A DNA stretch of 64,000 bases, from contig NC_043002.1 of assembly GCF_006345805.1 (NCBI RefSeq), positions 3,410,001 to 3,474,000 of the forward strand, given 5' to 3'. Source of the stretch: Octopus sinensis (taxonomy: Eukaryota). Below are positions 1,857 through 40,400 of the stretch, piece after piece. The notes under the pieces were generated by a model that was not told the DNA's origin, did not search any database, and saw only the letters and a program-made list of their open reading frames with translations. The first letter of the stretch is position 1. Every line of letters begins with the position of its first letter. Position numbers and translations under genes: made by a program.

Positions 1857-1889
1857 AAGAGAAAATTGAAGCAGTTCAAATCACTTCTG
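1857..1889 (+). CDS. Micro-exon 1 (33 nt, phase 1-1): EEKIEAVQITS
   Basis: Pyrimidine tract ttttacctctctcggtAG acceptor and G|GTATGT donor; stop-free; acidic start like the other array exons. Confidence 0.7.
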
Positions 1890-9500: not shown

Positions 9501-12177
9501 TAAAAAGTATCCCATTTGATCTCTGGACTCAATGTAATCAACGTTCCTCCTCCCTTATGATTGCTGGTCTGCTACCAAAATTTGGAACCATTATTATTAT
9601 TATTATTATTATTATTACTACTACTACTACTACTATTGTTGTTGTTGTGACACTGTAAATAGAAATAATTTTGACTGACTTCCATTGTCAATATCTTCAG
9701 AGTAATAATAATGGTATGACTATTCCAGAATCGTGTGAATAATTCTTGGCTTTTGGTTCCGACTTTAATTAGCTAATATATTTTCATGACTTGTTTTAAT
9801 TCTCTGAAATTGCATCTTGAGATTTCTTTGACTAATTTCTTTCCAATAAGCTTTCCGCTTATTCTTTATGTGAAAGCTTAATCCACCAAATGCTGTTTGT
9901 TAATCTTTTAATCTGTTGGTTTCTTTAAAGTAACTCTGATGACAGAGTGATTATATTTATTCCAAGCTAGGGTCCCCCCTGATCCCTTTTACTCTGTTCA
10001 AATCCATAGTTTGCTGTGGTTCTTAATGATTATCACCAAAATAAACAAAAAATCAGGGCAGGGGGGGTGCGTTTGTGTTTCTCATTGCTAACAACAGATG
10101 TTGGTTTGTCTATGTCCCTGTAACTTAGCAGTTCAACAAAGAAACCAACAGAGCAAGTACCAGACTTACATAAGAAGCACTGGAAACAATCTGATGTAAA
10201 AATTATTGAAATTTCAAAAATTATTTTCAAGTTTCCATTTGTCTTTTGCATCAAAGTATATATTTTTAATTAAATTTGATTTAACTATTAATTGATGAAA
10301 GCCAAACAGAATTGTGCATTGTTTTTGGAACAAATTTGTTTGATTTTAGACCAGGAAAATCACTTCTATTTTGTGTGTGTGTGTGCGTGCGTGCATGCAT
10401 GCATGTGTGTGTGTGTACGTGCGTGCATGCATGTGTGTGTGTGTGTCTATATTTGTTTCTGAAACTTCAGTGACAGTCTATTGATATTGATTTTATCTTT
10501 CATTCAGAGGAAGAAATACAAACTACTTATCGTAAGGGTAGGTATCGTGCAATATTCTATTATTATTAGTATCATTATTATTATTATTATTATGAAGGTG
10601 GTGAGCTGGCAGAATTGATCGCACGCCGGGCGAAATGCTTAGTTGTATTTCGTCTGCCTTTACGTTCTGAGTTCAACTTCCGCCGGGGTTGACTTTGCCT
10701 TTCATCCTTTCGGGGTCGATAAATTAAGTACCAGTTGCATACTGGGGTTGATGTAATTGACTTAATTCCTTCCGCCCAAATTTCAGGCCTTCTCCTTCCA
10801 GTAGAAGCGATTGCTGTTGTTATTACTGTTGTCAGCATTGGGTTTGGCTCTTTTAAGTTCTGAGTTAAAATCCTACCCAGGCTAATTTTGCCCTCATCCT
10901 TTTGAGGGTTAATCAAATAAAGTACCAGTTATGTACTGGGGTCAGTATAATCAGTTAACCCCTTCCCCCTTTGTACCAAAGTTTGAAACATTTCTATCAT
11001 AATACTGATTAGATATCAATATGTGATATCACCTGGTATTCGTACAGTTCTTTTTCTCTTTTCTTCACGACTCAATGCTGAGTTGTGCAGAGACTCACTC
11101 CATCGTCAAATATCAACAACCTCTTTAGAATAGGTTTTAAATTCCTACAACTTGTTACATCTCTGTCTCCTCCCTCTTGCCCTCCCCCCCGTCTCATATG
11201 GCCAACCCTGAGGTTGATTGTGCCACAGAGATTAGCTTCCTTTTTACCATGGGCCAACTCTATCACAGTTTCATTTATAATCCTCACATGACGATGGATT
11301 AGTTCCAGTTAATTTGAATTGAATTTGTGGATTATTGCTAAATTACTGTTGAGCCATTGAGCTGAGAAATGTCTTTCTACCATTCAAATGGCATTATTTT
11401 GTAAAACCAGTCTTGAAAGTACCATGGCAAGTTTTTCAACATAACTTAATTATAATGAACCTATAAATTTTATTTTTAATTATAATTATTATTATTTTTT
11501 ACTAAGAGATACTTAAACTTTTACTTCTGATACCCTGATTTTTGTCCCAAACCTGTCAGTATTTATTTTGTTCTATCTTTTGTCTTATAAAGCTGAGAAT
11601 TTGCCGCCTCCTAGTTTTATGGGTAGGTATCAGTTGTCTGGTTTGCATGATGCTTCCTGGAGTTTTCCTGTAGTCATAGAATCCCACTTACTAAAACTTC
11701 TAAAGTCATAATTTTAGTTACCTTGATATCTAGCTGTTGTATTGGTTCAATTTAATTCATTTAATTACCTTCCTCATAAAGACATAATTAAATCTTGAAA
11801 TGTGTTGTTAAGATATACCAGAAGTATACTTTCGAAGAAAATTATGTATTGTTATATCAGCCATGCTCTAAATGAAAACCATTTTTTAGTTGGCGTCAAA
11901 GAGAGAAGAGTTTGCTGCAAATATTTAGGTCCAATAATATTTGTTCCACTCACCTTAATTTCACACCACATCAATGATGATGATGATGATTGTTACTACA
12001 ACTGAGGTGGAACAACGATTCCATTATTAGATGCAAACCTCATCAGTAAAAATAAAAAAACAAAGAAAAATCACAACAAAAATATATATTAAAGGATGAG
12101 GATTAATTCAGTCTTTTGGTCCTCTTGAATAAAATGGCTGTGATACTGAAATATTTCTTGAGCAACTGTTTGCCCCG

Positions 12178-12221
<44 letters not shown>

Positions 12222-15200
12222 TGGATGATGTTGCATTGTGATGGTTGCTTTTGCTTTCATTGCAAAGAAAAAGTATAACATTTTACATTAATTTGTATAT
12301 TTTAAAAGGTTTTTAAATGGCAATCTTATTTTAAGCCCTGTGTGTGCATAGAGGCACCAACAACTGAAAACAGTCTTTGTGTGTTGACTTAGAATCTGTT
12401 GCAACATTACGTCCTCCTCTTCTCTCTCAGTTCAAAGAAGTTGTTAATTTATTCTGATTGAATTATTTTGCTTACCTGTCAGGTGGCAAACATGCAGTTT
12501 TTTCATTATAATCTCCTTCAGTCAGTCATTAAAACAGGGCCTGTGAGTATTGAGGTTTGAGGTGGGGCCTGTGAGCATTGAGGTCTTCTTACACTGCTGC
12601 AACCCCAAAAGAGAGAAACATGATGAGGTGGATCTGATCAGCAAAACTCTCTACTTTAAAGCATTTCTTAAACTGCCTTGATGTCTTTTATGCTAAATAT
12701 GGTGGAAGTAGTAGTACGGGGGAAGGTGCTGTGACAATGCATCATTCCATCTACCATTTGTTAGTGATACCCTACACCTGGTGCATGACACCTTTGCACC
12801 ACTTGGGTGACAACCCTCCAATCTATGGGTCTGTTTTGGGGTAGCTATTGAGGGTTTTATGAGGTCAGAGTGCAAATCCTCCCTCAGCCTCTTTCAGTTG
12901 CCTTTTATGAGATGCAGAGGAGATGTTGGGTCTATTCTTTGGCAATGCTGGTTCCCACACAGCACAAGAATAATATCAAATGAAGTGTTTTGCTCAAGAG
13001 CATAACACACCGCCTGGTCTAGGAATTGAACCCATGATCTGGTGATTGTGAGTAGATCTTCACCACTAGGCCAGCCACCTTCACTAAGGCTTGTTGTTAG
13101 ATGGGAAAAGATTTATTGTGGTTTGCTGCTTATATATTAGTAAAAATAGGCGACAGAGAAAGATGTTGGATTGCAGGTAAGATGTCACTGTCTGTAGAGA
13201 TGACCAAAGAAACCCAGATAACTAACATCAAAAGGGATCTGCAGTTTCTCAGAATTGTGTTTGTGCAAAAGGGTGATGTCCAACCCTGGTACATGAGAAA
13301 TATGGAGAAAGTGAGAACTGTGTGTGTGTGTGTGGTTGCACTTGATGTTTTTCATGAACTTAGTCCAATAAGAAGAATAAAGAGGTTGTATACTGTCAAC
13401 TTAACGTGACAGTAGGGGATTACACCACTGCTGTTTAGCCCTAGGAAGCATCGACGCTTCCTGTCGGCTTCGACACATTTCCTGTGTCCTTATATATTTA
13501 CGAAGGAAGCATCGAATAAAGAACAATTAATAAAATGTTACATAGTTGTGTAGGGGGAAGAATTTCTTTTTTCGAGATAGTTACTGCAAGAAAGGTCCTT
13601 CCATATTTAAGTGGACCCAAACTTGTTCAGCTTTTCTTTTATGCTCTTAAATTAGTCTTCAGCAATTGACAACTAAACGCATTTGAGGTTCTGCAAAGTA
13701 AATCATTTTATAAAGAACAAGAATTTGTCTGTTCAATTAAATTCCATCTGTGTATTCCTCCTTCATTTAATTTAGTTTTAATTGATTTCCTAACTAACGT
13801 ATTAATTTATTTTCCTATGTTATTTTAATATGAATAAAGTTAAGTTTCATTGCTAACAATTTTACATTATCAACCTTGTCTCCAATGTTTATCTTTACAC
13901 AACTCTCTGTTCCCCGACTGCTGGACTTAGTGTCTTTCTCTCCCTCTAGCCTTACAATGGATTCTAACTGAAACCTTTTATTTGTAAACCAAAGATAATA
14001 CCATTCTCATCCAGCTGGCCATATGTAGTAGAAGTATGGCAGCAGTTTTAGCTTAGTCAACTGATATCATTACTGAGTTTTCTGATTGAATTGTGCTTCC
14101 ATTAATAATTCTCTATCAGTTCTGAAACTGTCAATACGTGGCTGTTCATGTTTTCTTCTTTCACACTTTATATTATAATGTTCAGCCATTGTTCACTCTG
14201 ACGTAACACTTCTCATTAAGCCCCCCCCCCCCCGTTTGTCTTTTACTCTCATCTTAAACACTAATTGGTTTATTGTTGAAAAGGCATTCTACAAATGGAT
14301 CAGATGTTGCAGACCTCTCTCCAATACTAAAAGGAATGGTTAGATTTGAAAACGTGTCAGATATTTAATCTCCTAAATTTATTCCCCCCCCCCCCAGATG
14401 ACCAGAATGCAATATCGTTAGATAACAACTAATAATCAATCAATTGTTGGGTTCCTGAGTGTTGTTTTTAATCTCCAATATTAATCAATAACAACTGCAG
14501 TGGTTTATGATTAAACCCGTTAAGTCTTTCAATGGCTTTACACCTTTGTTCTTTGATATTTTTGTTGAAATTCTATCCTATTTCTGTTCCAGTTGAAGAA
14601 GTGGTCAATGATGCTGACATTGAGGGTAGGTAAACCAGATGATGCTGCTATGTATTAGTTCTGGTCAGACCCAGTCTTTTACCATTTTATTCATTGTTAG
14701 CAGGTGGGGTGGGGTGGGGGTACTACAGGCTCTTGTGAAGTCAAAACAATTCTTTCTCTTTGTATAATTCTGTGAATGTGTATATAATTACATTCACACA
14801 CAAACTGACAAAGTAATATAAAATTCCACCGACATTGAATTTAATTCAGCAGATCATATGTTGTTGGACAATGCTACTTCATTGTGAATATTATTAGAGA
14901 GAATTAATTATATTGGGTCATCCCATAAATAATACAGTTTTTTTCAATTGCATGAACTAAAAGTTGGAGGGGACGGGTTAAACTACCTGAATCAGCTTGC
15001 TATAAAAGCAGATAGTAATTTTACCTTGCCCTTGGTTTTAGTGCAAGTTTTGAAGAGTGCAGATCAATTTTAACAGTTATTTTTTTTCAAAGCTATAATG
15101 GAAGTGACAAAGGAACATATTCGACATATTTTGTTTTATGATTTCAATAAAGGCAACAATGCAACAAAAGCTGTGAGGAATATTAATGCAGTATAATGGA

Positions 15201-17426
15201 GATGGAACAATAAGCATAAGCCAGTGTCAATGGTGGTTCTAGAAATTCTGAACTAGAAACTACAGCCTAGAAGACGATCTTCATTCTGGAAGATCTGTAA
15301 AGTTTGATGAGGACGCCCTGCAAACCCTGGTGGAACAAGATCCCATTGTAACTGTAGAGAAGCTAGTAGAGAAGCTTGGATTTGATCATTCAAACTATTC
15401 AGCAACACCTGCGTGCCATCAGAAAAAATCAGCAAATTGGGTCAATGAGTTCCTCACAAACTTTCCCAGTCTAATCGCATGCAGAGAGTGAATGTGTGCT
15501 CTTCTTTGCTGTCACGTCTCACGAACGAACCTCTTGTGGACCGATTAGTGACTGGTGACAAGAAATGGTTTCTCTATAAAAATGTCAAGTGCCAAAGACA
15601 GTGGGTAGGGAAAAGAAAAACACTGGCACCCCAGGCTAAAGAAAGTTTTCACCCACGTAAGGTGTTGTTATCTGTTTGGAGGAATATGAAAGGTTTAGTG
15701 CACTTTGAACTTTTAAACCCAAACCAAATGATAACTAAGATCTACTTTGAGCAGTTTAAGTCAGCACTGGAAGAAAAACGACCATCTTTGGTTTCAAGAT
15801 GAAAGGTGTTCTATCAGGATAATGCTTGGCCACATACAATGAGGATGACATTCCAAAGGCTGGAGCAGTTTGAATGGGAAAAGGTGCTCCACCCACCATA
15901 TTCACTGGACATTGCCCCATCTGACTATCATTTATTTGACAGTCATCAAAATCATTTGGATGGAAAAAATATGAATTCTGTAGACAAGGTCAGAATAGTA
16001 CTGGAGGAGTATTTTTTGTCATGGACAAATGAATTTTTGAAAAGGAGCCTTGCAAGTCTACCAGATACATGGAAGAGCAATGTAGAAAATGAAGGAGAGT
16101 ATATTTTAGATTTTTAAAAATTTATCTTTATTTTGAAAAATAAAAGTACAAAAAACCCACATTATTTATGGTATGACCCAATACTGTTAGAGAGGACTAC
16201 TGTTTGTTGCTAATTTTTGTGTACAAGTTTTCTTTTAGTAGATCTTGGTGGATTAGGGATTAGTTTATCCCTGACAGTGTTCTTCAATGAATGTTGTTCA
16301 GTTTAGACAAAAGAATTCATTGGATTCTTGTCTGAAAGCTTGAGGTCACTTAGACATTCCTCACTTCAATAGATGACAAATTATAAACCTGGTTTTCTTG
16401 TTAATCTGAAATCTCTTTAAAACTCAAGTGCAGAATAGACATTATTGTGAATATCTTTCTGCTTAAAAAAAAAAAAATATTCAAAGGATTTTCTGTGCCC
16501 ATGGGTTTTTTTTTCCACCATGAGGGAAGTTCAACTTGGACTTTTAGAGAGAAGACCTGGCTGGGAGGGATGTATCCATTCGTGTGAGTGGGTGTTGAAG
16601 GTCTCCAACACAACCATCATTTGTTACCACATGTTGTGGTCTCAGCACTCTGCCAGGCTTCATTTCCCTATTTAGTTCTTGATAGCATCACTCCAGTTTT
16701 ATCTTTGTTGCCCATGAAGCTGTTTTCTGTCCCTCTGGTCACTGAGGATGTGGACACACAACTTCTGGGTCCTGATAATATGACTAAAAAATTACAATTA
16801 TTGCCATTTGAATGTTGTTACCAAACTTTGATCTGCTCCAATCTTTAAGACTGAATTCCCTGATCTACAGGCCAACCAACTGATCCACAGTGCTCCCCCT
16901 GTAGCTTGTCATCTTAAATGCCATCAGTGGTCTGGTGTCAGCCACCTTTAGTCTGTCCTTCTTATCTTTAGGGTTCATACTTAAAGAACACTAAAACTGC
17001 CAGAAGAAAGTGATGAAAGCTTTCGTTTGTTTAAATCTTTTAGTTTCTTTTATCAATAATTGTGCTTTTGAAATCATCTTTGTAATTAATTATATTCTAT
17101 ACTTTTTCACTATACCATTGTACTTTATTAATTGATATGCTGTTGATAAAATGTACTTTTATGCACTTCTAAAGTCTTGACTCTATTTCACTACTCAAAT
17201 GTTGACAATGTAATAATAATAATAATATCATATATATGACAATGTAATATATTACATATACGATGATAGTGTAATCACAATATATTATACATTCTTTAAT
17301 ATATTATTATTGATTTTTAATTTTTGTTTTACATTAATAGAAGATTTACCACCTCCAGTTGGAGTGGGTAGGTACCTGCCTTCTGGTTGATTTGCATGCT
17401 CTTTTCACTTTACTCTCTTTTCAAGA

Positions 17427-17469
<43 letters not shown>

Positions 17470-20400
17470 CTTTGCAATTTAAATAGAAAATTCTTAATAC
17501 TTTTGACAATCTTTGTAGCAATTCATAAATGGTTAATTTTGGATTTCTGTTTGAGGCATACTTTTTTAGAAATTCTTTCTGTTTGTAATATTTGCTACTT
17601 GCAAGTTTACTTGCAAAATTTGTGTTTGTGTGTGATCGCACATGCTTCAGCTTTTTTTCATACATCATCTGGCACTCTTAGAAATACCCAACAACTTTGA
17701 TAGATTCAGATAAATTTGTTATGACTACAAAAAGATGGATTAAATTGACTTTTCTATCACATTAAAGCGAACCAGTGTTAAGAATATACCCAGGCATGGC
17801 CATCTGGTGACTACAGTGTGTTCCATGTTAATACTCACTACAAATCTGCTCAATTTTAATTTTATTCAAATTCAAACTCGCTTTACCTTTTTAATAATTC
17901 ACAGTATTGACCAGACCTCCAGATGCTGTTATACACCGCTGGTCACAATGCACTTCCAATTCTGTCTTGATTGTGCCATTCTTTTCTATCTTGAACCATA
18001 TTGCTTAACTAGATTGTCTTCTCACCATTGTGGTAGACTTCCAGGTGGCTTTTTTTTTTTTGATCTCATGTATACCACTTGGCAACTGCACAGGTCCACC
18101 TTTTGTCTGGGAACCCTGCAACATGTCCTGCCCAGCAGAACTTGTGCTTTTGGTATTCTGCAATCACATTGTAATCTTTGCTCCAATCTTAAATTATTTC
18201 ATTTTGAATATGTTCTCGTAATGATATTCCTCCATGGCCCTTTGCGCCACAGCCAATCAATGTTCTATCCTCTTTGTAGCAGCCCATCTCTCACTTATGT
18301 ATTCTCAAGTAAAATCATATTAAATACGAAAGAACTTAAATTACTTTTAACATATGTACTTTTTTCATTTTTTAAGTTCTTTTATCTTGAAAATGAATTT
18401 TGGTATATTTCACCATTTTCTTATTTTAGGGACAGCTAGAGAGTACAGCTGTTGTAGTTGTGATTTTTATTGACTGACAGACCAGTTAAATCCATCTATC
18501 ATTAGTTATTCATTATTCTATATTTATTAGTCAGGGGGATTGAAGATAATTATCCTAACTTTGCTTTGTCCAGAATTAACAAAGTGTCTTTAACATAAAT
18601 GTATATTATTATTATTATTATTCCATGTTGAATTCTGTCCTGTTTCTGTTCCAGTGGAAGAAGTGGTCAGTGATGTTGATGTTGATGTTGAGGGTAGGTA
18701 AACTAACCGCTAGATGATAGTTCTGATCATTTAGTTTTGTATTTTTCAGTGAAATGTAGGATGATATTGTTAACCTACCACATTATTTGGTCTCTCTGAT
18801 AACTTGATTTCCTGTCTGGACGTTTCAATGAATTTGAACACATTTAGTAAAATGGCTGGATTTTTTTTCATCGGTTATATTAAATGTTGATTGTATAAAA
18901 TATTTGTTATAAAGCTGGTTGTATGAAATGTTGTAACTTAACAGCCAAGTGAAACGCTCATCAGTTAAGATGTTGGCATTAATTGATTGGGATAATTTTT
19001 TGAAAGTTGAGATTTTTATTTAAATCTGAACACTTGATGAAGCAGATTTCCAACCCGTTGCTATTGGAAACCTTAAATATTGTTACATAAAAGGGATTTT
19101 ATTTTTTTCCGAGAATACAACACTGCCACATAAGATTACTTTGTGAATATGCTTAAACTACATGTTTACTAGAAAAATCTGTGGAAACACACATTCAGGT
19201 GTGTACATAACTTCTTATGGTGAAGACTTTATAGTCTCTGATGTATATCCATGAATTAAGGGGATTATAAACTCCTTGTTCCAATGAAGTCCTTTTCTAC
19301 AGATTACAATTTTCCTTTTTCTAATTTCCTGGTTGCTGTTAAAACTAGGCTCTTTTTTTTCATGTGTCCGTCATACAATCTGGAATGTCTGTTTTGCTAT
19401 TGAATTGATAGACTCCTATGTATATTATGGCATTGATTCAAAGTGATTCTATTTATATCTTTGACTTTTATTTTACATGACTAGAAGACTTACCACCTCC
19501 AATTGATGAGGGTAGGTACCTCATAGTTGATTTGCATGTTTTGTCATTTCTCTTCCTGATCTTTATTATTTTTCTCTCTCTCCTCAATATTTATACAACA
19601 AATATAGGTTTACTCTAAACACCCGAGTCTTCTGCATTACAATAGAATTTAGTGTTTTAAATGGGAAGTCTTTATAACTATTCTTAAGAATTATCTCAAA
19701 TAAAACTTTGATTAGTATTTAAGGTTTTCTGTTTGTAAGTTGTTTTGTAAGTAAAATAAGACAGTTTTATGACAAGTTTTACCTAAAAAAACCTTTTCGA
19801 TTTAAGGCCTATTATATTCGTCAGCACTTGACTCAGCTTGTCATTTCTCAATTCAAAATATATATTGTAGTTTTCTGAAGGAATGTCCACTGGTCACTTT
19901 GCACACTCCCAAAGGATAAAACAATATATTTGAAGAGGAATTTAAAATTTAAATTTTTCTCTAAATATTGTATGCAATTATAAACAACAAAGAATATTTG
20001 AATATATATGTATATAGGGGGAGAGTTCATGAAAAAAACAAGACGAAGACAGGTGGTGTAGAAAGCAAACAGATGTATTAGTATAATGCTCAGGAATTGA
20101 AAAAGTCTTTTATGTTTCGAGCCTACGCTCTTCTACAGAAAAGGACACAATATATATATATATATTCAAAGGATTCTGGGAATACTGCTTAGAAGGGACA
20201 AAATAGCAAACGTCAGCTTATAATTCAAAGGTTTGCTGCTGGTGGTGTTCATAGTTTGTGTATGCCATCTTTGAGAATTGATTTTAGATTTGTATTTTAC
20301 TTCCATTGTTAACAATAAAGATTTGCTTAGCTTCATAATGATCTGTACTCCTAGGTGGCTCCATGGATTCTGTCCCTAGGCCCTCATTTGTAGTATCCCT

Positions 20401-23400
20401 AAGCAAGACTTCATCATTTACAGCAGATATCATCATCATTTAGCGTCCGTTTTCCATGCTAGCATGGGTTGGACGGTTTAACTGGGGTCTGTGAAGCCGG
20501 AAGGCTTCATCAGGCCCAGTCAGATTTGGCAGTGTTTCTACGGCTGGATGCCCTTCCTAACGCCAACCACTCCGCGAGTGTAGTGGGTGTTTTTTACGTG
20601 CCACCTGCACAGGTGCCAGACAGAGCTGGCGAACGGCCACGAACGGATGGTGTTTTTACGTGTCACCGGCACGGGATATGTCACCGGCACGGGTGTCAAT
20701 GATATATTTATAGATATGTCAATGATATATTTATAGAGAGAGAAATAGGGAAGAACAGGTCTTTAAGTTGATCTTGGAAATAATTCCATTCTTAGATTTA
20801 CAATCACACATAGTTCTAGCCTAATAGCTATTTCCTCTTTTGGGAAATAAGTGTAGGATAAGGAATGACACATAAAAGACTTCAGTATACACAAAAATCA
20901 TAAATGCCTTTACATACCCACCGAGAGTGATCCGTCCCCACCCATAAATAAATGACTGCAACCATTGCTGACACCCAGCACTGGAGTAGGACTGTCGACC
21001 TGTGGAGTGAAACAAACATTGAATTGGTGACTTCACTCATGTTTGTGCTACAGTAAAATACATTCAAAAGATACTGTGGAGTGGTAGGTGTTAAAAAAGA
21101 CACCCACACATAGAAATTGTGCCCAAAATGGATTGTGCAAAATAACTGTGACAACCAGTCCAATCCATGCCAGCATGGAAAACAGATGATGGTGATAAAG
21201 AAATGTTACAAGTGAAACGAACATTAATTAATAATGGATGCCTTGAAGAGATTATTAGATTATTCTACAGATTAATCTATATTAGTTGACCAAACAACAC
21301 ATTCACCTATGTTGATGCAATCAATAGAGCACTCAGTAAAAAAACAAAAGCCAACACATATATAGCTTATGTAGTATACTACTACTACTACTACTACTAC
21401 ACACACACACTAGAAGAACCAAGTGCACCTGAGTTACAGAGTGGCTGAATATGTCTTAAAACAGAACATGTAACATGCCTCCCTATAAACTCAGTCAGAG
21501 TAAATTACAAAAATACTGGAATGAAAATCGTTCGGGTCAACATGAAACTAAAGATTTGCAGAACAGAACAGACAACCTGTGCAATAAAGAAATTTCAGTG
21601 TAAAGGTTGGACGTTGTAAACTTCATGACTTCAACTGTTGTGTCAGACTTCAACAGGAATGACACTTTCTCATTGGTTGATCCTGCATTTACAACGAGGA
21701 CCCAATGCAACACAATACAGGAAACAGAATCAAACAGAAAAAAATATTTGCTGCTGGCATCACCATTCTATAGAGATTAACTGTGGAAGGTTTTACTAAT
21801 AAAAAACAGCTTTCAAAAAAAGTCCCCCCCTCCCAAATTAGCTTCCAGACACAGCACACATAAACATAGAGTTTTGTTCTTTGCTGCATTAATGTTTCAA
21901 GGCTTTCTCAGTTATATAATAGCTAAGGGAGCGGCCCAAGCTGTTATAATGCAACTGGAGCTCACCACAATATTATTTTTAATGTTATAATATCAACAGT
22001 TTATGGGGAAATGTTAATTTATAAAATTTATGAAACTTTTGGCATCATTGGACCAACATTTAAACTATAGTTTGGATTATACTATATAGTATTATACTAT
22101 ATAGTATTTCTTTCCTACTGAGTTTATGATCATTAGCATTGTTCAATATATATAATGAGTCCTATCTTTGGAAGCACTCTCTTTTAATGCATTATTATAA
22201 TCACGAGCAGCATAGTCAAGATTTCATGTCAGGAAATAAACTGATATTCACTTGTTAATGCTATTAGGGACATTTTCAAGAATTATTGTGCATTGAAGAT
22301 GTACAATCCTATAAATTCACAAATCTCAGTTCAGTCCTATGATCCTTTAGTTACATCAACCAAAATATTAGCATAAAATAGCAAAGATTTCTTATTGATC
22401 ATATCAATGCTTCAATCATCAGTTAGAATAAAATCTCGGCTAAACTCTAAATTTTTCTGAAGAAAAGATTTCTTTATAGATAGTTAGGACCTACAAATAG
22501 AACTGTGTAAATGTATAATGTGGCCTTTCTATTTTATTGTATCATGTCCTTTTGAGCAATCATTTTGGAAGATGTTTAAGGCACAAACTGTTTGAAATAT
22601 TTCTTGTATTTTTTCTTTGGTGATAATTATTCTACTAATAATCACCTTGCAAAGTTTTATAAAATCTATGGATTTCTGTTGAGCAGAAAGCTTTCTTATT
22701 ATGAGAATAAACCCTAAGCAAGATTTTAAATATGGTATGAAATTTAGTTAATTAGTTTGTTTGTTTTTTGTAAATAAAATTTAATAAAAGTTTAATTTGT
22801 CAAAGAAATCAAACTTTATTCTATAGTTGTTACTGAGGGGATTAAAGATTATAAAGTTTTGTCCAAAATTAAGCTAGAAATATTGCTGTGGTGCAAAGAC
22901 TAATAAGTCTTTGACATAAATGTGTATTATTCCATTGTATCTTTGTTTGAATTCCATCGTGTTTCTGTTCCAGTGGAAGAAGTCAGTGATATTGATTTTG
23001 ATGGTAGGTAACTAGTTATTCCTGATTCTCTCTTTCTTCACCATTTTTTTCAAAGTATGCCACTTTAGTTAGTTGATATCTGATAATTTTTAAAATCTCT
23101 TTAGAAATGGATTCCAGCCTATCGTTGCCATTTATTCCAATTTAACTTTTTAATAAAAGATCAGAACTGTCAAAATTAGATTAGATTTGTTTTGTATAAC
23201 CACAGGAAACATTCATAGCTTTTCATTGCCATTCTAATGCACACATTGTTGATATATATATATATATATATATATATTAGTGCGTGTATGTGTATGTACA
23301 GCTGCTTTTAAGTGATTTAACCTGGTGAATATTTTTGTGTGAATAACCAAGGTCCTGTGTCTAATTCGGTACTCAAATGTTGATTGTGTAATAACATTAT

Positions 23401-26400
23401 ACATTCTTTAAAATATCAATGTTATTTACTTATTTTTATTTTTTGTTTCACTTTAACAGAAGATTTACCACCTCCAGTTGGAGTGGGTAGGTACCTTCTG
23501 GTTGATTTGCATGTTATTTCAACTTTAGAACCTTCAAATATCTTTATAATTGTTCACAGCAGCTGCTGTTCATAAACAGTTAATTTTGGGTCATATCTGT
23601 TTGTAGTATAACTTGTTTAATATTCAAAATTCAATATTACTATTTGTTTCTGTTGAGTATGATGTCTGACTGGAGAAAAACGAAAAAAAAAAAAGAAGCC
23701 CTATTAACCGTTTTCTATTGTAAATATTAAAGTACAATCTATGGTACAATCTTAAAGGAAATGTCTTCTTTCATTAGGGTTGTAGAACTTTCTCTACTTT
23801 CATAACTTTTTAAGGCAATCCCTCTTCATTTCTGTTGCATAAATGGATGAAATTATTGGAAACGATTGCCAAACGTTTGCTTTGTTCAAAAACTAATCCA
23901 GAAATATTTTTGTGGTTTGATACTAATCAGCTGTGTTCAGAAATTTGTTCATTTATCCATTTATTGATGCATCTCCTGTTTTTGTTCCAGTCGAAGAAGT
24001 GGTCAGTGATATTGATCCCGATGGTAGGTAACTGGATGTTATCTGATAATCTTCATCACTTAATCTTGTATATTTTAATTATTGTACAGTCACCCCCCCC
24101 CCTTAAATCTTAATTATTTCCTGTCGTTGATGTAATTATGACTATATCTTACTTCTGATCTCTATCGTTTATTACAAACAACCTCGATCATAATTTTGAT
24201 CTTTACCATAATTACCTTCTGTAGCAAAGTCCTTTTTTAAAACCTCATTGGTCTTATAGCTCCACCAAGTTCCCTCTTTTACCAAATTTTGATGTCAGTA
24301 TGCACACGAAACAAATCTCTTATGTCTGTGGTAAGCCGTTGGTTTTGGTGCTACACTGAAAGTTCTTCTGGAATAATCTAACCCACAACAGCCGTCAGAT
24401 GCTAAATTCACTACAACTTTGTTATTTCTAATTGCTGTGGTGTTTGTTCTTGTGCTGTTGTGATCCAATTTCACAATTACCATATTCATTCTTGCTGCCA
24501 AGTTTTACAGTAGCTTCTTTCCAAGCCTTGTATCTCAGTGTTTTCTTTTATGGTAAAATTTGAAGGCAACTATAAGAGTACAACTATATTGATGCTGTTT
24601 TAGGGGTTGTATTGTTTTACTTCCAGTAGAGTTTATGACTGTAATAAATTGTCTTGAAGGAAAATGATAAGCACTTTTAGGAGAGGTTTATGAATTTAGT
24701 GTGGTTGAGAGTTTCTCTTTGTATGTGTGTGTGAGAGAGGAATGGGTCTATTCTCTAATTTCCTTTAATTAAGTCTGTTAAGTTATTTACGAAATGTTTG
24801 AACAAATTGCTACTTGAAGAATATAAATTCTCCAAGAACCTGACAAAACTTAGATTCTCTTAGAATTCTTTAAATAGATATTTCTTTTTCACTGACCTAC
24901 TTCTGAAAGTTTGTCATTCATAACTGGTTTATGAAAATATTTGGAAAGAAATGTCATTATTCAGGCTGACTTTCAATAGATAGGAAAAAATAAAAAACAG
25001 GTTTGATGACTTCACTGGATTTGTAGCCTGTAGCTTTCATACAATACAGAATTTTTAAGGTGGATGTTGTATAAGAGTTTTAATTTTGATCTGGAAAACT
25101 TTCAGAGAAGAGTATGTTCAATGCTTAGCATTTTTATGATTTCTTGAAACATGGCTTTGGACAATGTCTTTTATTGGACTTTTGCTTGAAAGAAAGGCTA
25201 TTTTTATGGCAGTGTAATCAGTAACAAGGAAAATGTAGTCCATATTGGTTTCTGGAATATTTATTAGACTTCCATAAACAAAACTGATTGAAATTTGTTG
25301 TGAGATCCTCATTTAAATGTCTCTATAAAACAAAACTCATTTTTTGAAGAATCTTGCCCATCACTAAAAACGTTTAATTTTTTTTTTTTCCATATTTTCA
25401 GTTTCTTCCTTCCTTTTCTGTAACTCTTTCATTTTCTTGAATTCCCTTATCCAAGTTTACTCACAAATTCTTGTCTTAGGAATCCCAAAGCTCTTTTAAG
25501 TATTTTTATCGGTTCTAGTTTTCTCTGGTTTGTTTTTCTGTTATCAACTGTGAAAAACTCTATAACTTTATCATACTGGAATAGGAAAAAAACCCTCAAA
25601 AACCACAACTTTTGTTTATTATTGAATCAACTCTATTCCCCTAGGTTTCTAGTGTTCCTAGTGACGAAACAATTGTACTTTGCTCTGTTTAAAGCAATCA
25701 TCTTTGATGGTAATTAATAGTTTATTTGTAACTAAAAAGAAGTCTTTTATTTTTGTATTTTTTCTGAAGTCTGTACCATTTCTGTTCCAGCTGAAGAAGT
25801 GATCAGCGATACTGAGATCGATGGTACGTAACTAGACAGTCCTCATCATTTCATAACCATACTTGCTTCTAGTGATTCATACTGTTTGATTAGCTCACAG
25901 AAAAATAAATACAACTGAAACACCTCTTTAAACTTTGCAACCCCAAAATCTATAATTGCAGTTTAAATATAAATAATTTAAGTATAAATAGCCGAACAAT
26001 TATTCTGTGCTGATGAAGGGAAATAACCCGGAAATGATACACAGATATTGTTTTGAGCTGAGTTGGGGTGCTAGATTGCCTTGTTTGAAAATATAAGGAC
26101 ACAGATCATATTGTATCGCCAGCTGGTGATGATGTCTCCTGGGGCTAAATTACGGCAACATTTGTCCTAAACCAGGACTGCCATGTTATGTTGGCAAACA
26201 ATTTTTACTCCAAAGTATTGTTGCTGAATATCTCTTGTTGTGAGATTTACAAATAGTAATTTTCTAAATATAAATAAAGCTACATATTTAAGCATATCTA
26301 ATCCTAAACAATAATCTAAAATATTTTGTTAAAACCCAGTTTGCAATGTTGCTGTTAAATTAGACATTAATTCTTGATTCACAAAAAAAAACGGCCTTAT

Positions 26401-29400
26401 ATTTTGTCTTGAGTTATGTAATAAAAACTAAATGGTTTCCTTTATGTATGATTAAAAGATTAAACAAGTTTTGTAATTTGTTTGAAATATTTTTAAGCGG
26501 ACCTTTAAGCAATACAGATGAGAAGTTAGGCAAAATCTGTCAGGTGATGTCAATGAATAAAGACAGAGACAAGACATCACTCTATGTTGAATGCTTCTTT
26601 TACATTTTGGGGAAGCATTTCCTTTAGCAAATATAAGACAGTGGTTCATACTTCATTCTGGTGTGTTATGTTTCTTTCCTGGGATATAACTGAAGCATTA
26701 AACAATCTACATAGAGTGATATAGCATCATGTCTTTATTTATTGACATCGTTTTACATACTTTGTCCAACTTATCTGTATTGTTTAAAGGTTTTCTTAAA
26801 TAATACTTATATCAATTAATAATCTATGTAACTATTTTCTCATACTGAACTTTTGATAAATTTTTATAGCAATAATACTTCAAATATATTTTCAATGAAA
26901 AGTATTGAAATTTTTTATAGAGTTAGATATAATTCAAAGATAGTGAAATTTTGATGCCAAAACAATAAATCAATAATATTTATTAATTAACAACATTTTA
27001 CAAAATATATGTATTTATGTTTGTGGTTTTAAATATATAATTCAGTTACTTTTTTTTAGTTTAAATCTGGCTGGGGTTGATAAAATAAATACCAGAAATA
27101 TATCGATTGCTTGCATTAATATTGATAATTATTTTTTATAACGATCATACTTTTATCAGTTTTAATTTTTCCTGAGAAAACGTTTGGCAATTTTTACGTA
27201 GAATGCTGTTTGGTGATAATTTCTGTTGAACATTATATCATGACGTTGTTTACAAGGATTGTTATAAATTCAAAAAGATGCAAAATAATCAAGTTTTATT
27301 TCTTCAAATTATAACTGTCTATTGACTCTTAACTTCCTGTAAGACCTAATAGCATTTGGGGACTCTGTCGGTCAACTACTCCTGAAACACAGGATGTCAC
27401 AAGATTCATACTAACCTTGTTCACATTCATTTTGAAGGGAGTAAGGAACTCTCTAATGCAAGGGAGAAAACTTTACTCTCTTCCCCTGTTAATTTATTGT
27501 TCTGTAATGGCATTATTACAGGAATGGGGCTTTCAAGAGGATGTTGTTTAGAATTAAAATAATTAGTTTTACTGTAATTACCCTTTAAAGAAGTGGTTCC
27601 CAACATGGGGCCTGAGAAAATTGTGGCAGGGCATGGTGCTGTGGTCACCAGGCACAAGTTTCACTTTTTTTTCTTAATCAATAATGCACTTTTTTTGTTT
27701 ATACTCAATACTTAATAAAAGAGTTAATGATAGTCTTTTACAGTAAATAATTGTGGTAAAATATTAAAAATAAAGTTGTTTTTTTTCCCCAACCACTGGT
27801 GGGGGCATACATTTTCCTGGAAAGTTATTGTGAAGCCTGGGGAAAATAGGTTAGGAAATAGCTTCATCTTCAAACCTTCCTTCTTAATCTTAATACTTCA
27901 TAGTGTTGCAAGAGAGGTTTGGTTTGCTTATCTGACTGGATGCTGATGATCTGGTGTCGTATTTTAGAATGGTTAACAACCAGAGAAAATCCTTGGAAGG
28001 GTAGACTTGTGTTGCTAGTTCCTAATTAGTTAATTAGTTTCCGGGACAATAAGGAGGAATTACAACTGTGTTTCGTGGTCTGCTACCACAACAGCTCCTT
28101 TATAGGATCCAGTTAGCTCAAGACATCATCAGGAGGAACCACGTCCAGTTTCGGCCCCTACTCCTCTACCGTTTTGATGTGGCGTGCCCCCCCCTTTCGG
28201 AGGTGTCTTCAGCTCTGGTGTTGGGTGCATGTCTTCTTTCTTCTGTTCCCTGGCCTCTTTGGTGTAAGCGTCAACGAGTGTCAGCCGGTGACTGACTGAC
28301 TTGTCAAATTTTTTCCCTTTAAATACTTGCTGCTAGGCTCCAGCAGGCAGCCCCAGCAAGTTGTCACGTGACACTGTCTCAACTTTAACTGACCAATGAA
28401 GGTGCATAGTCTTAGCCCGCACATTCTCTAAACGACCGTCACCTGTCAGTCAGCGAAGTTAATTCAGTGTCAGCTTGTCTCACCTAGAGATGTTATTTCC
28501 TACCGGCATATTATGACTTTCAAGCCATTTTTGGTCTTCCTGCTTCAGCCATATAAAGGTGTAATCTCTAAAAAAAGAAATGGTTTTGTTAGGAATACAA
28601 GAAAGAAGGAAAAACAAGAATTTACTGTTTTACATTTCATGCAAACAATGCACAAGTGGTGCACTTCACTTAGATGCACTTCACTGCATAATAATAATCT
28701 GAGAGCCCAAGTTTCTTTCAATGTAGTGAAGTATTGTTGCTTAAATGGTAAACTTAGAATTCCAGCTGTGACTATGACCTGCAGATGGAAAGTTTAGACA
28801 AGTGTTATTCTTGTTGACATTTGGTTGAGATTTCTGTGAATCTTATGCTGCACAACAGTGGTAGTGAGTGGGCATAGTATATGCTACAGCAGTTGCATAA
28901 CAGCAGCTTCTTGCAAGGCCTGTTTTGTTGGTGTCAACAGTTATTGCAGAGGGAGAGAGTGATGTATGGAGGGGGGGAGTTGTTATCTCTGGGGTCCGTT
29001 ATGTTGAATCTGTTACTGTTGTCTTTACTATAGATTATATAAACTTGAAGCTATTTCTTTCTCTACTGACAACTCCAACATCAGTCTGGGTGGGTATAAG
29101 GATGGAAACACTCCGTCGGTTACGACGATGAGGGTTCCGGTTGATCCGATCAACGGAACAGCCTGCTCGTGAAATTAACGTGTAAGTGGCTGAGCACTCC
29201 ACAGACACGTGTATCCTTAACGTAGTTCTCGGGGATATTCAGTGTGACACAGAGTGACAAGGCCGGCCCTTTGAAATACAGGTACAACAGAAACAGGAAG
29301 TAAGAGTGAGAGAAAGTTGTGATGAAAGAGTACAGCAGGGATCACCACCATCCCCTGTCGGAGCCTCGTGGAGCTTTTAGGTGTTTTCACTCAATAAACA

Positions 29401-32400
29401 CTCACAACGCCCGGTCTGGGAATCGAAACCGCGATCCTATGACCGCGAGTCTGCTGCCCTAACCACTGGGTCATTGCGCCTCCAAGGGTGTGTATATATT
29501 ACATTTGGAAACAAAGTATAACAAGACTCTATCATTCTATCTCCAAGAACAATTATTAGGAAGAAAAATTTACCATTTTGGGTGGGTGAGCAGTGTTCAT
29601 TCGGTGGGCCCGGAATATACATTCCTGATAACCAGGTGACTGCCCTAATTAGTTGTACATGTTAGGTGGGAGTGAATTGTTTCTGTTGCAAAGATAGATC
29701 ACAAGAAAAGAAATCCGATATGGCAACTTTGGTGACCATCACAAGTGAGATGATAAAGGACGAAGAAGCATTGTAAGATGCAGTCTTGCTCTCCAATACA
29801 ACCCATATCAGAATGGTAAAACTTGCCATAGAAAGGGAATAATGTTAACATTACAATTAAATTTTAATTTTATAATAAATTTATAAATTTTAAGTTGTTT
29901 ATATATATATAATATGCTCACAATAATTTGTGGTGTGTATAAAATAGCTGACACTTTTTATACATATATATATAGATATCTTTTTTTTCTTATCAGAAGA
30001 CAAATTTTCGGCACCAATTATTGTTGGTAGGTATTGAGTTGAAGCTTCAAGCATGGTGTTCTCCTACTTAAAAAAAACCTATTTTGTGTAGTTTTTTTTT
30101 TTTTTGTAAACTGATTAATTTTGCAGCTGTTTCTTGTCAAAGATTTTGGGCTTATCTAGTAATCTTAGAAAACTTAAAATGGTTTTATCATAAGTTTAAT
30201 TATGCATGCAAATATTTTTAATCACTTAAAATCTTGATGACTTTAAAATTACATTTCATATTAATATTACAACAAAAAGCGAGTAGAACACACACACACT
30301 CACTCACTGCTTTTTAAAAAAAAAATGTAGTCAAGATTGTTCCACTAAGAATGTTTGTGAAGAATGTTTGTCTTATTCAACAGAATTGATGTTTCTGTGG
30401 GTTTGCAATAATACTTTTATTAATTATAGTAATGGTGTCATTATCGTTACTGTGCTGTCATATGTAATTTTCTTTATCAATTTCTGATGTTTCGTGTTAG
30501 TTAACAGTGATCCGTTTTATCAATGAAGTCTTTAATCATAAGTCTTTAATCAGCACCCATTTGTGACATTTGATTAACATCTCATTTTCCTTAATAACCT
30601 AGTCTTCAGTGAGCAACAGCTGCATATTTATTTAAGTAAAAGTGGGTCTAAGTTTCACAGCATTTATTTTATGTCTGTTTTTTCCATACTAGCACGGGTT
30701 AGATGAATATATTATTGAAGCGTTGTTTTATAGGCCAAAAGAACTGACAAAAGCAACACCCTTTCATAGCTCACAACTCAAAGAGCACAAATGTAAGCAC
30801 AAGCCTACACATATATGATGGGCTTCTTTCAGTTTCCTTCTATCAAATCCGCTCACAAGACTCATGCCCAAGGTGCCGCACAGTGGAAACGAACCCTTTG
30901 TTGTTTAACCTTTTGCATAGCATCTCTCTGTAGGTTTTCACTAATTTTTTGCTGTTGTTTTTTTTACACTTTCTTGTCAATAGTGTCAACATTCTGAGAC
31001 TAAACTTTGATCTGCTTTTTCTTTTGCTTTCATTGGACTGCATTCATGTGTGCAATGTAAAAGGTTTTACTCAAACATATCAATATCTGGTGCTTAATAG
31101 TCTCTGTTTGTTATACTGCTAAGTTACAGCACAAACAAAACCAGAACTCTTTTACAAAGCAATGTCAACATCAGATATATATTTCTTTATTGCCCACAGG
31201 TGGCTAAGCACAGAGGGGACAAACAAGGACAGACAAAGGGATTAAGTCGATTACATTGACTCAGAACGTAATGGCAGATGAAATGCCGCTAAGCATTTTG
31301 CCCGATGTGCTAACGATTCTGTCAGCTCACCGTCAACATGCAGATATAGAGACATACATACAAACACATATGCTCAAAAATACACATACACAAATATGCA
31401 CATACATGTACAAACACATGCACTCACGTGTGTGTGTGTGTATGCCTCTCTCCTCGCGACTGCTGCAGCCCAACACTGCTCTCTTAATTCTCTTTCTCTC
31501 TCTCCTGTCCTCCCTCTGCCGACTGTATCATTACTGTCACTTCTTTCCTATCTTTATATACCTGGTGCCAGTGACATGTAAAAAGTACCATCCAAAAGTG
31601 GCCGATGCCAGTGTCCCCTGACTAGCTCCAGTGCCGGTGGCACATAAAAAGCACTATCTGAATGCGGTCGAGGCCAGGGCTGCCTGACTGGCTCCTGTGC
31701 CAGTGGCACATAAAAAGCACTATCCAAACGTGATCGATGCCAGGCCTGCCTGACTGGCTCCTGTGCCGATGGCACATAAAAAGCACCCCCTACACTCTTG
31801 GAGTGGTTGGCATCCAGCTGTAAAAACATTGCCAGATCAGATTGGAGCCTGGTGCAGCCATCTGGTTCACCAGTCCTCAGTCAAACCGTCCAACCCATGC
31901 CATGATGGAAAACAAACGTTAAATGATGATTTCATCCCTCCCTGCATTCCTCACTCCCTTTTGTACCTCCATGAGCTCCTTACTCATACACCCTGAACAA
32001 TCCTCTTCCATTCCATTTATATTCGCATCCTTTTACCTCAAGAGCACATCCTGGCACATTGTCACCATTTCTTTCGCTGTCCCTTACTCTTCCTATCTCT
32101 CTCTCTCTCTCTCTCTCCAACTGGGGTAACCATGCATCTCCTCTAGAGCATGATACCTGTTTCTGTGCCCCTATCCTAGTTTAAGATCTCATCTCCTGGC
32201 ACAAAGCCACATTTCCTTCAATACCACTTACCATCTTAGCTGAGCGATCTTTGTCTTGCAGGTCTTGTGGTCACCAGTGCCAGTGCCAGGTGCCACTTCA
32301 CTCTGCACCCAACCACATATTTTACTTAATTTATTTCAATTTCCTTTGTAAATGGAAATGAATGTATGCTGTTTCTCTTCTGTAGACGTAGGAAGAACTC

Positions 32401-37400: not shown

Positions 37401-40400
37401 GCTATTGAAAAACATTTCCTTGTTGATGTTGTCTTTGACTATCTCTGATCAGTGTCAATTAAAAACTGTTAATTAATATTAGCAAAAACGATGATAGAAA
37501 AGATGAAGTGGTTGGTCAATAAGAGTTTATCTTTGAAACCTTAACCTTTTTCAATTGAAGTCTGTGTATGTTTGTATGTATGTATATATCTGTATATAAA
37601 TAAAATGTGAATACTTGTGGTGCGTCTGTTGAGCTAACATTCACACTCTTTATTCTCTAATTACCATGCAGGAATGACTGCAGACGGTGAGTAAATGACT
37701 CCTGCATGACACCTTTACCATTATTGCTTTTTTTACCATTTCTATTGCCCCTGATATTTTTATTCTTGCTACTTGTTGTTGTTGTGTGTTTTGTTTAACC
37801 CTGCTCCTGTCATCTGTTTCGATTCCATTGTTGCTTATTATTAAAAGTCATTGTTAACACAATGCTTAACCGTTTCGTTATGTATTAAAGCAATTAGCCA
37901 CAGGATCAGGGTTGACATATTAAGTCACTGTTCAAATCTGATATTGTAAAATATTTAAATATTTTATTGTTGCATGTTAATGTTGTCATTGTAATTCTGT
38001 TTTATTTATTCAATTTTATTTTATTTACCATTTTATTGCTTGTTTTATTTATATAGCCAGAATCACAAACATTGCTCTTCTTTTAACTTCTTTTTTTTTT
38101 TCAATATATTTTTTTTAACATTCAAAATAAGTCTTTAATATATTTTTTCATGACTTTCTCACAGTAGTTTTCCTGCTTTTTGTGAAGAAGCAGACCTGGT
38201 TCCATTTCCCACTATAGACTTTTTGGCAAATAGAACAATGCACTTGATACGTCACTATAAAATACATAAGGACTATGTGGCTCATTGCTTGGTTTGTTGG
38301 GTTTTTTGAAAATTAAAATAATCTTGGACAAATTTGTTTTTGAGATTTCCCATACTCCATCTTTTTGGAAGTTTTCCTGGTCTGTTATTTTACCCATTGG
38401 GGTGACAGCACTAAGCAGTGATGTGTTTAAATACAAACGATAGTAAATTATAATGGTGTACTTCAATTTGACCTGCTGTATACCTCAAGGGTGCCCACAG
38501 GAATTTCCAATGATATAATTCAGTTTCTTTAAATAAGAAAGGCTAAATAAATCCTGATTCTTTTATCAATCAGATTCCTATTTATGTCTTTTACTATTTA
38601 CAATTCTTCATAATTATGAACTCTTTGTTATATTTTCATTACACTAAAAATCATTGATAAAGTAATTTGATGCAAAATAATTATTGAGTGACTAATTAAC
38701 TTGTTAATCACTCTGCTAGTGTGATGCCTGTTATATGAATTAAGCATATTTGCCCTATTATGCTATGTAAGATGAAAACCATTCCATATTATTTGAGCAG
38801 TTCTATTCAGAATAACATTTAAAAGTCAACCATTGTTATGTGTACTTGGAAATACTTCCATTTTGGAGTACATTAAGTGTTCAGAATGGCTTATCAGTGA
38901 GTAGAATAACATTTTTTAAAAACTCCTCCAAACTAAACCTTACTTTCATAAGGTTTCACTTCATAATCTCCCTTCATTTTTATTAGGGATACCAAAGGAT
39001 TCTTATATTGACATCACTTGAGTTCAGGTCTTCATTGCTATCAAATATTGTTACTTTATTATTATTATTATATTATTATTATTATTGAATGATATCTTAA
39101 TAGTTTTTGTAAAATAGTGTTTAGTCTTTTGTTAATAATATCCATTTCAAAAATTGGATTACCAACATTGCACAATGGAATCATAGCTATTTACATTGTA
39201 TGCACACACACACACGTATATGGTAGTATAGTCGTTGATAGTAGTATATGCTATGTAGTAAACACTCTTCAACTGTATTCTGCTACCAGTCTTTGACATA
39301 AAATGTAATTCCTTGTCTGACCAAAGAAGAGATTCTTCCAACTCTACAAGAACCTAGCTTTCAGTTCTGTGCTATTTATTCAGTGTGTGTGTGTGTGTGT
39401 GTGTGTGGAGAAAGATGATTGATCGAGTCTTTGATGTGACTTAGACATATCGATTCCATAAACTACATATTGATGTCTCCTGATAACATTAAATGGATGA
39501 GAAGCAAATGTCAGTGGCCAGCTCGAAACAGTCTTATATTTCCAGCCAAGCTGAGTTCCGACCACAACACAACAAAGTTAAACAACAGAAACTTGCAATC
39601 AATTTGCCAAGCAATGCAGTAATTTAAGTGCCAGCATCTGATTCCTTCAGCAATTCACCTTTGTTACCAAGATGGCCATCACTTCTATCTGGGAAAGAAT
39701 TTTGCTGCTTTTGATGATGACTGTTCATTTGTGTCTTGATTGAATTTCTGTCTAATTGGCTATTTCAGACATGTGCACCTTGAATGTAATTCCGAGACAA
39801 AATCAGCATGACACAGTATGTTATCGGTCTCCCCTTTGAATTACATGTCTAATCCACCCAGCAGGCTTCAGTACACTTTCCCAAATTCATTCACAAGATT
39901 TGGGCTGAGCTGGGGCTCTAGAAAATGACATTTGACTAAGATGCCAAATACTGGGATTGAACTGCTGACTTTGTAGTTTGTAAGCCATGCTGCATCTACA
40001 CTTACTTACATACATGATAGGTAGCTGCATTCCTATCACACACACACACACGATAGGCAGGTGTAAAAGAAAGAGCATAAAACGGTTGATGTTTTGCCAG
40101 TCTCAGTGTTCGTTATGCATGAATGTTGTCGATGTTCGCACTTGGTGCCGTTTAATGACATTCTTGTGTTATTCTTCAGATATGTGTGTTTTGTTTTAAT
40201 TCTTTGTTTTTATTTTTGTCAATGATTCTCTTTGATGTCTTGGCATGAGTTAGCATTATTATTATTATTTTCAGTCTTGAAATTATCTGAGAAAAGGTGA
40301 TTCCCTAATTAATTGTATCCAAATTGGTTTTGGGAATAATGTCAAGTTGTCTTTATATCAGACACATTAAAAGTATTCCATTAAAAAGTTTCTGAAGATT

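Follow-up and report, generated by a model that had tools for sequence, protein, structure and literature searches.

A tandem array of symmetric micro-exons very probably encodes an alternatively spliced, disordered acidic linker in LOC115212809 of Octopus sinensis

A series of very short exons was analyzed in a 64,000-nucleotide (nt) stretch of the Octopus sinensis genome (NC_043002.1, positions 3,410,001 to 3,474,000). This stretch is referred to below as the window, its own coordinates are used throughout, and all exons lie on the + strand. The first-pass annotation had read the exons as a repeat still growing by duplication of a two-exon cassette (one acidic and one Pro-rich exon). They are coding exons of LOC115212809 and already annotated in RefSeq, and it is very probable that the array consists of old, exon-duplicated and alternatively spliced micro-exons of phase 1-1 that encode a disordered acidic linker tuned by splicing. 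The gene architecture is ordinary in kind.

AT-rich animal DNA makes up the window, and its introns are long and rich in transposons. The stretch 14593–30026 holds five homologous acidic exons (A1–A5), three homologous exons encoding LPPP (P1–P3) and one Pro-like exon at 29997 (Table 1). All are 27–39 nt long, with a length that is a multiple of three, phase 1-1 and strong AG/GT sites; the acceptors consist of AG with a pyrimidine tract, the donors are mostly GTAGGT, and every listed mini-exon opens with the last two bases of a codon and closes with a single G. The mini-exons share one open frame that runs directly into the downstream winged-helix exon (43312–43420), and any subset of them splices in frame, with the residue at the junction (Val, Ala, Glu or Gly) supplied by each exon itself. 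Each exon of the first-pass annotation was present with its AG acceptor and GT donor, including the older, diverged ones at 1857, 4155, 4476, 10508 and 11593, which proved to be real, in frame and annotated. When the whole window was scanned for phase-1 symmetric open mini-exons, 22 candidates were obtained, of which 14 were the exons listed before and a 15th was a micro-exon at 37672, so that the linker region of LOC115212809 comprises at least 15 symmetric micro-exons (15–39 nt, or 51 nt with an alternative acceptor).

The gene was identified with a profile made from four full-length homologues, which was searched against 1.84 billion representative proteins and returned XP_036359489.1 (P0122), isoform X47 of LOC115212809, with the window exons matching at 100%. 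RefSeq lists at least 49 isoforms of this gene, and its protein cluster contains 48. X47 includes exons 1857, 4155, 4476, 10508, 11593, one of the two identical Pro exons (17341 or 23460), 23991, 25791, 29997 and the 15-nt exon, and skips 14593, 18655, 19485 and 22974. Predicted spliced products were then looked up by exact sequence among the RefSeq isoforms: the all-inclusive product of 760 amino acids (aa) is isoform X8 (XP_029637387.1), in which none of the five acidic and three Pro exons is missing, the same product minus MTAD (exon 37672) is X16, and the one minus 19485 is X21. Because of these exact matches the array exons are genuine coding exons. A homologous-protein search found no match when queried with the array peptides joined end to end, and the same search missed the O. 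sinensis isoforms and P0125, both present in that collection, so that its negative results for close relatives do not imply absence; with the last exon added to the peptide, only relatives of at most 59% identity were returned.

The mini-exons of the array are annotated coding cassette exons. An inclusion matrix was decoded from 16 RefSeq isoforms, which gives support at the level of annotation. Exon 14593 was skipped in seven of them, 19485 in five, 22974 in three, 17341 in two or three, 18655, 10508 and 37672 in two each and 4155 in one, and exons 1857, 11593, 23991, 25791 and 29997 were kept in all 16. The MTAD exon is found in X8 and X47 and is missing from X16 and X7. Since RefSeq lists the all-inclusive form together with many isoforms that skip subsets of exons, splicing would set the length and charge of the linker. 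Finer variation comes from NAGNAG tandem acceptors (nAG/AAG or CAG) at 4155, 4476 and 19485, which result in annotated one-residue variants, and from an acceptor 21 nt upstream of 29997, used in ten of the 16 isoforms, which adds DIFFFLS; this extension is a translated polypyrimidine tract and may be splicing or annotation noise.

In the protein, the array linker sits between a conserved N-terminal domain of ~165 aa and a module consisting of a winged helix (HTH_69) and a PNP_UDP-like domain. Pfam HTH_69 scored above the gathering score in X47 (35.9 bits, cut-off 27), PNP_UDP_1 reached 22.6 bits against a cut-off of 25.1, and several homologues carry precomputed PF01048 matches. Full-length relatives have the same order of parts, with an N-terminal domain of ~165 aa, a linker of 33–59 aa, the winged helix and the PNP-like domain. 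This host family (P0123–P0181 and L001) is widespread in invertebrates and uncharacterised, and in two of its members (P0134, P0147), and probably also in two others of similar sequence (P0135, P0140), a Methyltransf_FA domain stands at the linker site of the octopus array. Between the conserved motifs APLSPE and GL(P/Q)K(I/V)D there are no residues in the molluscan-grade relative P0178, seven in P0125 (a cephalopod transcript from two runs with 83% amino-acid and 75–84% nucleotide identity) and 181 in O. sinensis X8, or ~188 when the upstream 29976 acceptor adds its seven. Transcript contigs of a cephalopod-grade relative (L005/L006; Logan SRR8281673 and SRR8281690) were observed to encode a 582-aa orthologue in which only YIIEPTL, resembling the start of the octopus VKVETT exon, lies between APLSPE and GLQKVD; either this species is without the array or the transcript skips it. 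In the compact genome of a distant homologue (L001), a phase-1 intron interrupts the gene at the same point and is preceded by the acidic EEELPMGLEVDIDE. By this comparison, all octopus mini-exons occupy one ancestral phase-1 intron, which accounts for their uniform phase 1-1.

The X8 linker is strongly acidic, with a net charge of −48, and consists of 18% E, 15% V, 14% P and 13% D with nearly no Lys; in a charge-hydropathy comparison it lies beyond the boundary, among disordered sequences. Exons 14593–30026 encode up to 93 of its residues, with a net charge of −35. Each of the acidic exons A2–A5 has an S-x-x-D/E site, the consensus of the kinase CK2. A PDB sequence search with isoform X8 found no relative, and a literature search on LOC115212809 and HTH_69/PF22979 found no papers.

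The acidic exons are clearly of common descent, and likewise the LPPP exons, as judged by their sequence and that of their flanks. Self-blastn between exon copies gave E-values from 1e-8 to 1e-35 (e.g., 80.6% identity for 18586–18687 vs. 22907–23003 and 80.8% for 17264–17412 vs. 23381–23527), and nhmmer profiles of exon plus flanks picked up the five acidic and the three Pro copies and, more faintly (E = 1.7e-4), 11593, with no other copy on either strand of the 64-kb window. Length differences between copies are all 3 or 6 nt. The flank homology reported by the first-pass annotation is therefore real and far above chance, and its particulars were reproduced: the (t/c)tgttccag acceptor common to the acidic exons, the alignment of 18535–18654 with 22835–22973, and the common gtaggtacc...gttgatttgcatg of the Pro exons. 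The homology extends beyond the splice sites and is short, reaching 17–165 nt upstream and 8–70 nt downstream of the exons, largely at splicing elements. The Pro-like exon at 29997 resembles P1–P3 in its signals only (nAG/AAG acceptor, gtaggtat donor, GCAUG at +25), with no detectable nucleotide homology to them (nhmmer E = 0.17). A weak acidic-profile match at 37483–37563 (E = 0.076) was rejected, as no exon was found there on inspection, and Tandem Repeats Finder did not detect the array.

The two exon classes differ in their splicing signals. Acidic exons have the strong, nearly invariant (t/c)tgttccag acceptor and begin with GAAGAAG, a purine-rich exonic enhancer that here encodes Glu-Glu. 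Pro-type exons have weak, purine-interrupted acceptors and NAGNAG sites, and the conserved gttgatttgcatg downstream of them contains UGCAUG, the RBFOX motif. At +18 to +33 from the donor, (U)GCAUG is found in seven of the 15 mini-exons (4476, 11593, 17341, 19485, 23460, 29997 as AGCAUG, and 37672); GCAUG is absent within 300 nt of all five acidic exons and downstream of the donors of the five constitutive winged-helix/PNP exons. Given 74 GCATG on this strand of the window, the binomial probability of seven in 15 is 3e-8, or 6e-5 when paralogues are counted once. The 15-nt exon 37672 additionally has UGC immediately before its AG, which is typical of SRRM4-dependent micro-exons. For the symmetric micro-exons that are alternatively spliced in human brain, flanks are conserved over > 75 nt, TGCATG is enriched on the downstream side specifically, splice sites are weak and disordered regions are preferred (PMC4317164). 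We infer that what is conserved in the octopus flanks serves chiefly to control splicing (3′ splice-site region and UGCAUG), and the flank homology that the first-pass annotation took for a sign of recency is probably, at least for the most part, of this kind.

The identity of exons 17341 (P1) and 23460 (P3) at 27 of 27 positions was confirmed. Their flanks are 85% identical, compared with 58–63% flank identity and 22/27 exon positions for the other Pro pairs. By our own arithmetic, full identity at 15% flank divergence has p ~0.01 if the exon is neutral and an unremarkable ~0.3 if only ~8 synonymous positions are free. Selection and gene conversion, between which the first-pass annotation had left the choice open, are both still viable and neither is singled out: selection together with a somewhat younger common ancestor would be enough, and conversion is possible. 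The homologous block of ~260–330 nt (17262–17590 and 23378–23640) fits a conversion tract or the copy of a single exon, and the closeness of P1 and P3 is unmatched by the neighbouring exons, which fits a gene conversion of ~0.3 kb or a single-exon event. The latest visible event thus appears to be of single-exon scale, the block having been either copied or converted.

The model of the first-pass annotation, i.e., a young repeat still growing by duplication of the acidic + Pro cassette, from which one unit has dropped a Pro exon and whose intron homology is a neutral leftover, is unlikely, and its claim of recent or ongoing growth at the level of the cassette was not supported. The model draws on the significant flank homology, on the strict A-P-A-P-A-P alternation from 14593 to 23486 and on the compact unit 22974-23460-23991 (introns of 456 and 504 nt), which could resemble an original cassette. 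The intron interiors were compared between units by local alignment against shuffles, with 70 nt trimmed at the donor end and 170 nt at the acceptor end. They were no more similar than shuffled sequence (z from −1.9 to 1.9), the compact introns included, with the island 17522–17575 / 23569–23625 (z = 8.3) as the sole exception, and homology is thus restricted to the zone of splicing signals. Array introns today differ ninefold in length (456 to 4173 nt) and in the transposons and other insertions that they carry (e.g., a SINE-like copy, from short interspersed nuclear element, at 20429–20676 and a (TA)n run at 17431–17466). In the intron between 14593 and 17341, at 15252–16114 (+), the decayed remains of a mariner-like transposase are split over several frames (Pfam Transposase_1, E = 2.8e-15). 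The kinship among the exons speaks in the same direction. In fixed-window global alignments, flank identity was 69% for A1-A3, 59% for A2-A4 and 50–69% overall for neighbouring acidic pairs, exon identities group A2/A3/A4, and the relationships of acidic and Pro exons conflict under either phasing of a two-exon unit. Alternation itself is only weakly non-random: by our count, five acidic and three Pro exons can be ordered in 56 ways, of which 4 place every Pro exon between acidic ones. Exons 4155 and 4476 are neighbouring duplicates of one type, and therefore single-exon duplications also occurred. What stands of the two-exon unit is the shared descent within each class and the order of the exons, whose simplest explanation is an early duplication of an acidic + Pro pair. 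As for the unit said to have lost its Pro exon, no Pro exon or relic was found after 23991 by nhmmer profile search (24024–25790 and 25824–29996), and loss is indistinguishable from a Pro exon that was never present because the intron interiors are saturated. Taken together, the exons appear to have arisen through repeated old duplications, of single exons and probably of exon pairs, and the region gives no impression of continued growth.

That the duplicated exons are tolerated splicing noise, few of them used, with isoforms enumerated by annotation and a linker variation that is non-adaptive, is a possibility to which we give a low probability. It would agree with isoforms that are Gnomon predictions, with the noise-like 29976 acceptor that translates a polypyrimidine tract, and with the tolerance of disordered linkers for insertions; it agrees poorly with the retention of frame, in-frame indels and consensus splice sites in all eight duplicated exons despite 15–40% flank divergence, with the position-specific UGCAUG kept in every Pro-type copy, and with the all-inclusive form being itself an annotated isoform. 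Exonisation of a dispersed repeat with splice sites (a SINE or a miniature inverted-repeat transposable element, MITE) in place of local duplication is extremely improbable: the introns are indeed packed with SINE-like and MITE-like repeats, but neither type of exon-plus-flank unit occurs elsewhere in the window on either strand, the copies are collinear, on one strand and in one phase, and the units are without terminal repeats. Quite improbable, too, is a stronger version in which the array is an octopod-specific invention, with LPPP modules switched by a neural programme of RBFOX type, separately from the acidic modules, a linker tuning winged-helix autoinhibition or partner valency, and conversion keeping the modules identical. 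LPPP(V/I) of 17341, 19485 and 23460 was compared by eye with the ligand patterns of EVH1, SH3, WW and GYF domains and did not fit them. The class-I core of Ena/VASP EVH1 ligands is [FYWL]P.PP or [FYWL]PP[ALIVTFY]P, which is fitted alone by a constitutive KLPPPPPP that is encoded upstream of the window (seen in X47).

Several points weigh against old duplication and a splicing-tuned linker. The RefSeq XP_ isoforms are computational models, and some exon combinations may have been enumerated rather than observed. The only close relative available is a transcript (P0125), which may be an all-skipped isoform and need not mean that the array is missing. The duplications are dated by the loss of intron homology and not by orthologous loci, RBFOX control is read from motif position only, and the function of the linker is likewise an inference, the host protein being uncharacterised. 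Finally, LPPP(V/I) fits no canonical EVH1, SH3, WW or GYF pattern (judged by eye).

On balance, old duplication followed by alternative splicing would have worked as follows. Symmetric micro-exons would have been duplicated within the ancestral phase-1 intron, where relatives have 0–7 codons, thus lengthening the linker, and at least one later homogenising event of ~0.3 kb would have taken place between 17341 and 23460. Splicing would then determine how long and how charged the disordered spacer between the two folded parts is and how many LPPP modules it carries, with the LPPP modules under RBFOX-type control, probably in neural or muscle tissue, separate from that of the acidic modules. Such a linker could serve as an adjustable spacer and a block of charge and may be a substrate of CK2; in the protein it may alter interdomain reach, let the acidic tract mask the winged helix or change the interaction valency of the Pro motifs.

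Table 1. Linker micro-exons, homology blocks and downstream coding exons of LOC115212809 in the window
Feature	Position	Strand	Length and peptide	Remarks
Linker mini-exon	1857..1889	+	33 nt, EKIEAVQITS	In 16/16 isoforms read; 100% tblastn match to XP_036359489.1
Linker mini-exon	4155..4184	+	30 nt, AEECPLPDII	NAGNAG acceptor; X18 takes +3 acceptor; X40 skips
Linker mini-exon	4476..4505	+	30 nt, EDERPLPDVI	NAGNAG acceptor; UGCAUG at +33 (4537-4542)
Linker cassette mini-exon	10508..10537	+	30 nt, EEEIQTTYRK	X28, X40 skip
Older LPPP-type mini-exon	11593..11622	+	30 nt, AENLPPPSFM	UGCAUG at +23 (11644-11649); nhmmer Pro profile E=1.7e-4
Acidic exon A1, cassette	14593..14625	+	33 nt, VEEVVNDADIE	Skipped in 7/16 isoforms
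P1 homology block, partner of 23378-23640	17262..17590	+		Latest visible duplication or conversion; a (TA)n microsatellite breaks it at 17431-17466
Pro exon P1	17341..17367	+	27 nt, EDLPPPVGV	UGCAUG at +27 (17393-17398)
Acidic exon A2	18655..18693	+	39 nt, VEEVVSDVDVDVE	Conserved upstream flank 18513-18654; X42, X47 skip
Pro exon P2	19485..19511	+	27 nt, EDLPPPIDE	NAGNAG acceptor; UGCAUG at +23 (19533-19538); skipped in 5/16; +3 acceptor in X2, X17
Acidic exon A3	22974..23003	+	30 nt, VEEVSDIDFD	Conserved upstream flank 22816-22973; X37, X42, X47 skip
P3 homology block	23378..23640	+		Partner of 17262-17590
Pro exon P3	23460..23486	+	27 nt, EDLPPPVGV	Identical to P1; UGCAUG at +23 (23508-23513)
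Acidic exon A4	23991..24023	+	33 nt, VEEVVSDIDPD	In 16/16 isoforms read
Acidic exon A5	25791..25823	+	33 nt, AEEVISDTEID	In 16/16 isoforms read
Pro-like exon	29976..30026	+	29997-30026, EDKFSAPIIV	Acceptor at 29976 adds DIFFFLS; AGCAUG at +25 (30050-30055)
Micro-exon, absent from the first-pass annotation	37672..37686	+	15 nt, (G)MTAD	UGC directly before AG; UGCAUG at +18 (37703-37708)
First winged-helix (HTH_69) exon	43312..43420	+		Phase-1 acceptor; array reads in, in frame
Second winged-helix exon	48053..48171	+
PNP_UDP-like domain, first exon	50254..50397	+
PNP_UDP-like domain, second exon	56369..56494	+
Last coding exon, PNP_UDP-like domain	61724..62466	+		Stop codon included

Other repeats were also observed in the window. 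A SINE-like family of ~250–350 nt has at least ten copies on both strands that are 72–93% identical, some with internal repeats of ~66 nt (6928–7214, 20429–20676, 31565–31930, 33827–34212, 43962–44277, 51198–51543, 52407–52776, 54737–54983 and others); ARAGORN found no tRNA-like head in this family. An inverted repeat of 189 nt (6222–6409 / 6681–6869, 98.4% identity) is hairpin- or MITE-like and apparently young, and a palindrome of 272 nt (5024–5295) has a second copy (88%) at 26069–26268, in the intron after exon 25791.

The array offers a clean and small example of how a disordered linker may grow, in which phase-1 micro-exons duplicated in one intron give rise to dozens of isoforms through splicing. 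Its paralogues may serve as internal replicates that expose a cephalopod splicing code, with a strong acceptor and GAAGAAG in one class vs. a weak acceptor and downstream UGCAUG in the other. It also suggests that short, exon-proximal intron homology is an unreliable sign of recent duplication when exons are alternatively spliced.

Among known systems, the PEVK segment of titin invites comparison; its exons are said to have been described by Bang and colleagues in 2001 as two classes with a common phase. As in PEVK, a disordered segment rich in Pro, Glu and Val is encoded by two classes of short exon, one Pro-rich and one acidic, expansion occurred by duplication of exons or exon blocks, and length is set by splicing; exon duplication, loss and differential splicing have been reported for titin (PMC6469411). 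Unlike titin, the octopus host has ~760 aa with only HTH_69 and PNP_UDP-like domains and no sarcomeric Ig/Fn3, the exons are 27–39 nt compared with ~80 nt and number ~15 compared with > 100, and the linker is strongly negative and almost without Lys. The likeness is drawn with no claim of sequence homology, and the octopus array is not a member of PEVK, because its host is unrelated and lysine is missing.

Tandem exon duplication is also known to generate mutually exclusive exons (PMC8373072), as in arrays of the Dscam type (PMC4835542). The octopus exons resemble these in being homologous neighbours from local duplication that are alternatively spliced, but they do not form a mutually exclusive system, because X8 carries all copies together; here duplication lengthens the protein and does not substitute one segment for another. 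Tropoelastin is likewise built from alternating exon types with lengths in multiples of 3 nt, a junction codon split 1+2 (first base G) and free skipping of exons; it is a vertebrate protein secreted into the matrix, with hydrophobic chemistry and cross-linking through Lys. The octopus array shares its alternation of exon types and its 1+2 split codon, with no relation in sequence or host. The symmetric micro-exons of human brain (PMC4317164) are matched in size (≤ 51 nt), divisibility by three, alternative inclusion, conserved flanks of > 75 nt, downstream TGCATG, weak splice sites and location in a disordered region. Unlike the micro-exons described there, those of the octopus are largely paralogues in one tandem array inside a single ancestral intron, and the conservation of their flanks was measured between paralogues rather than between species.

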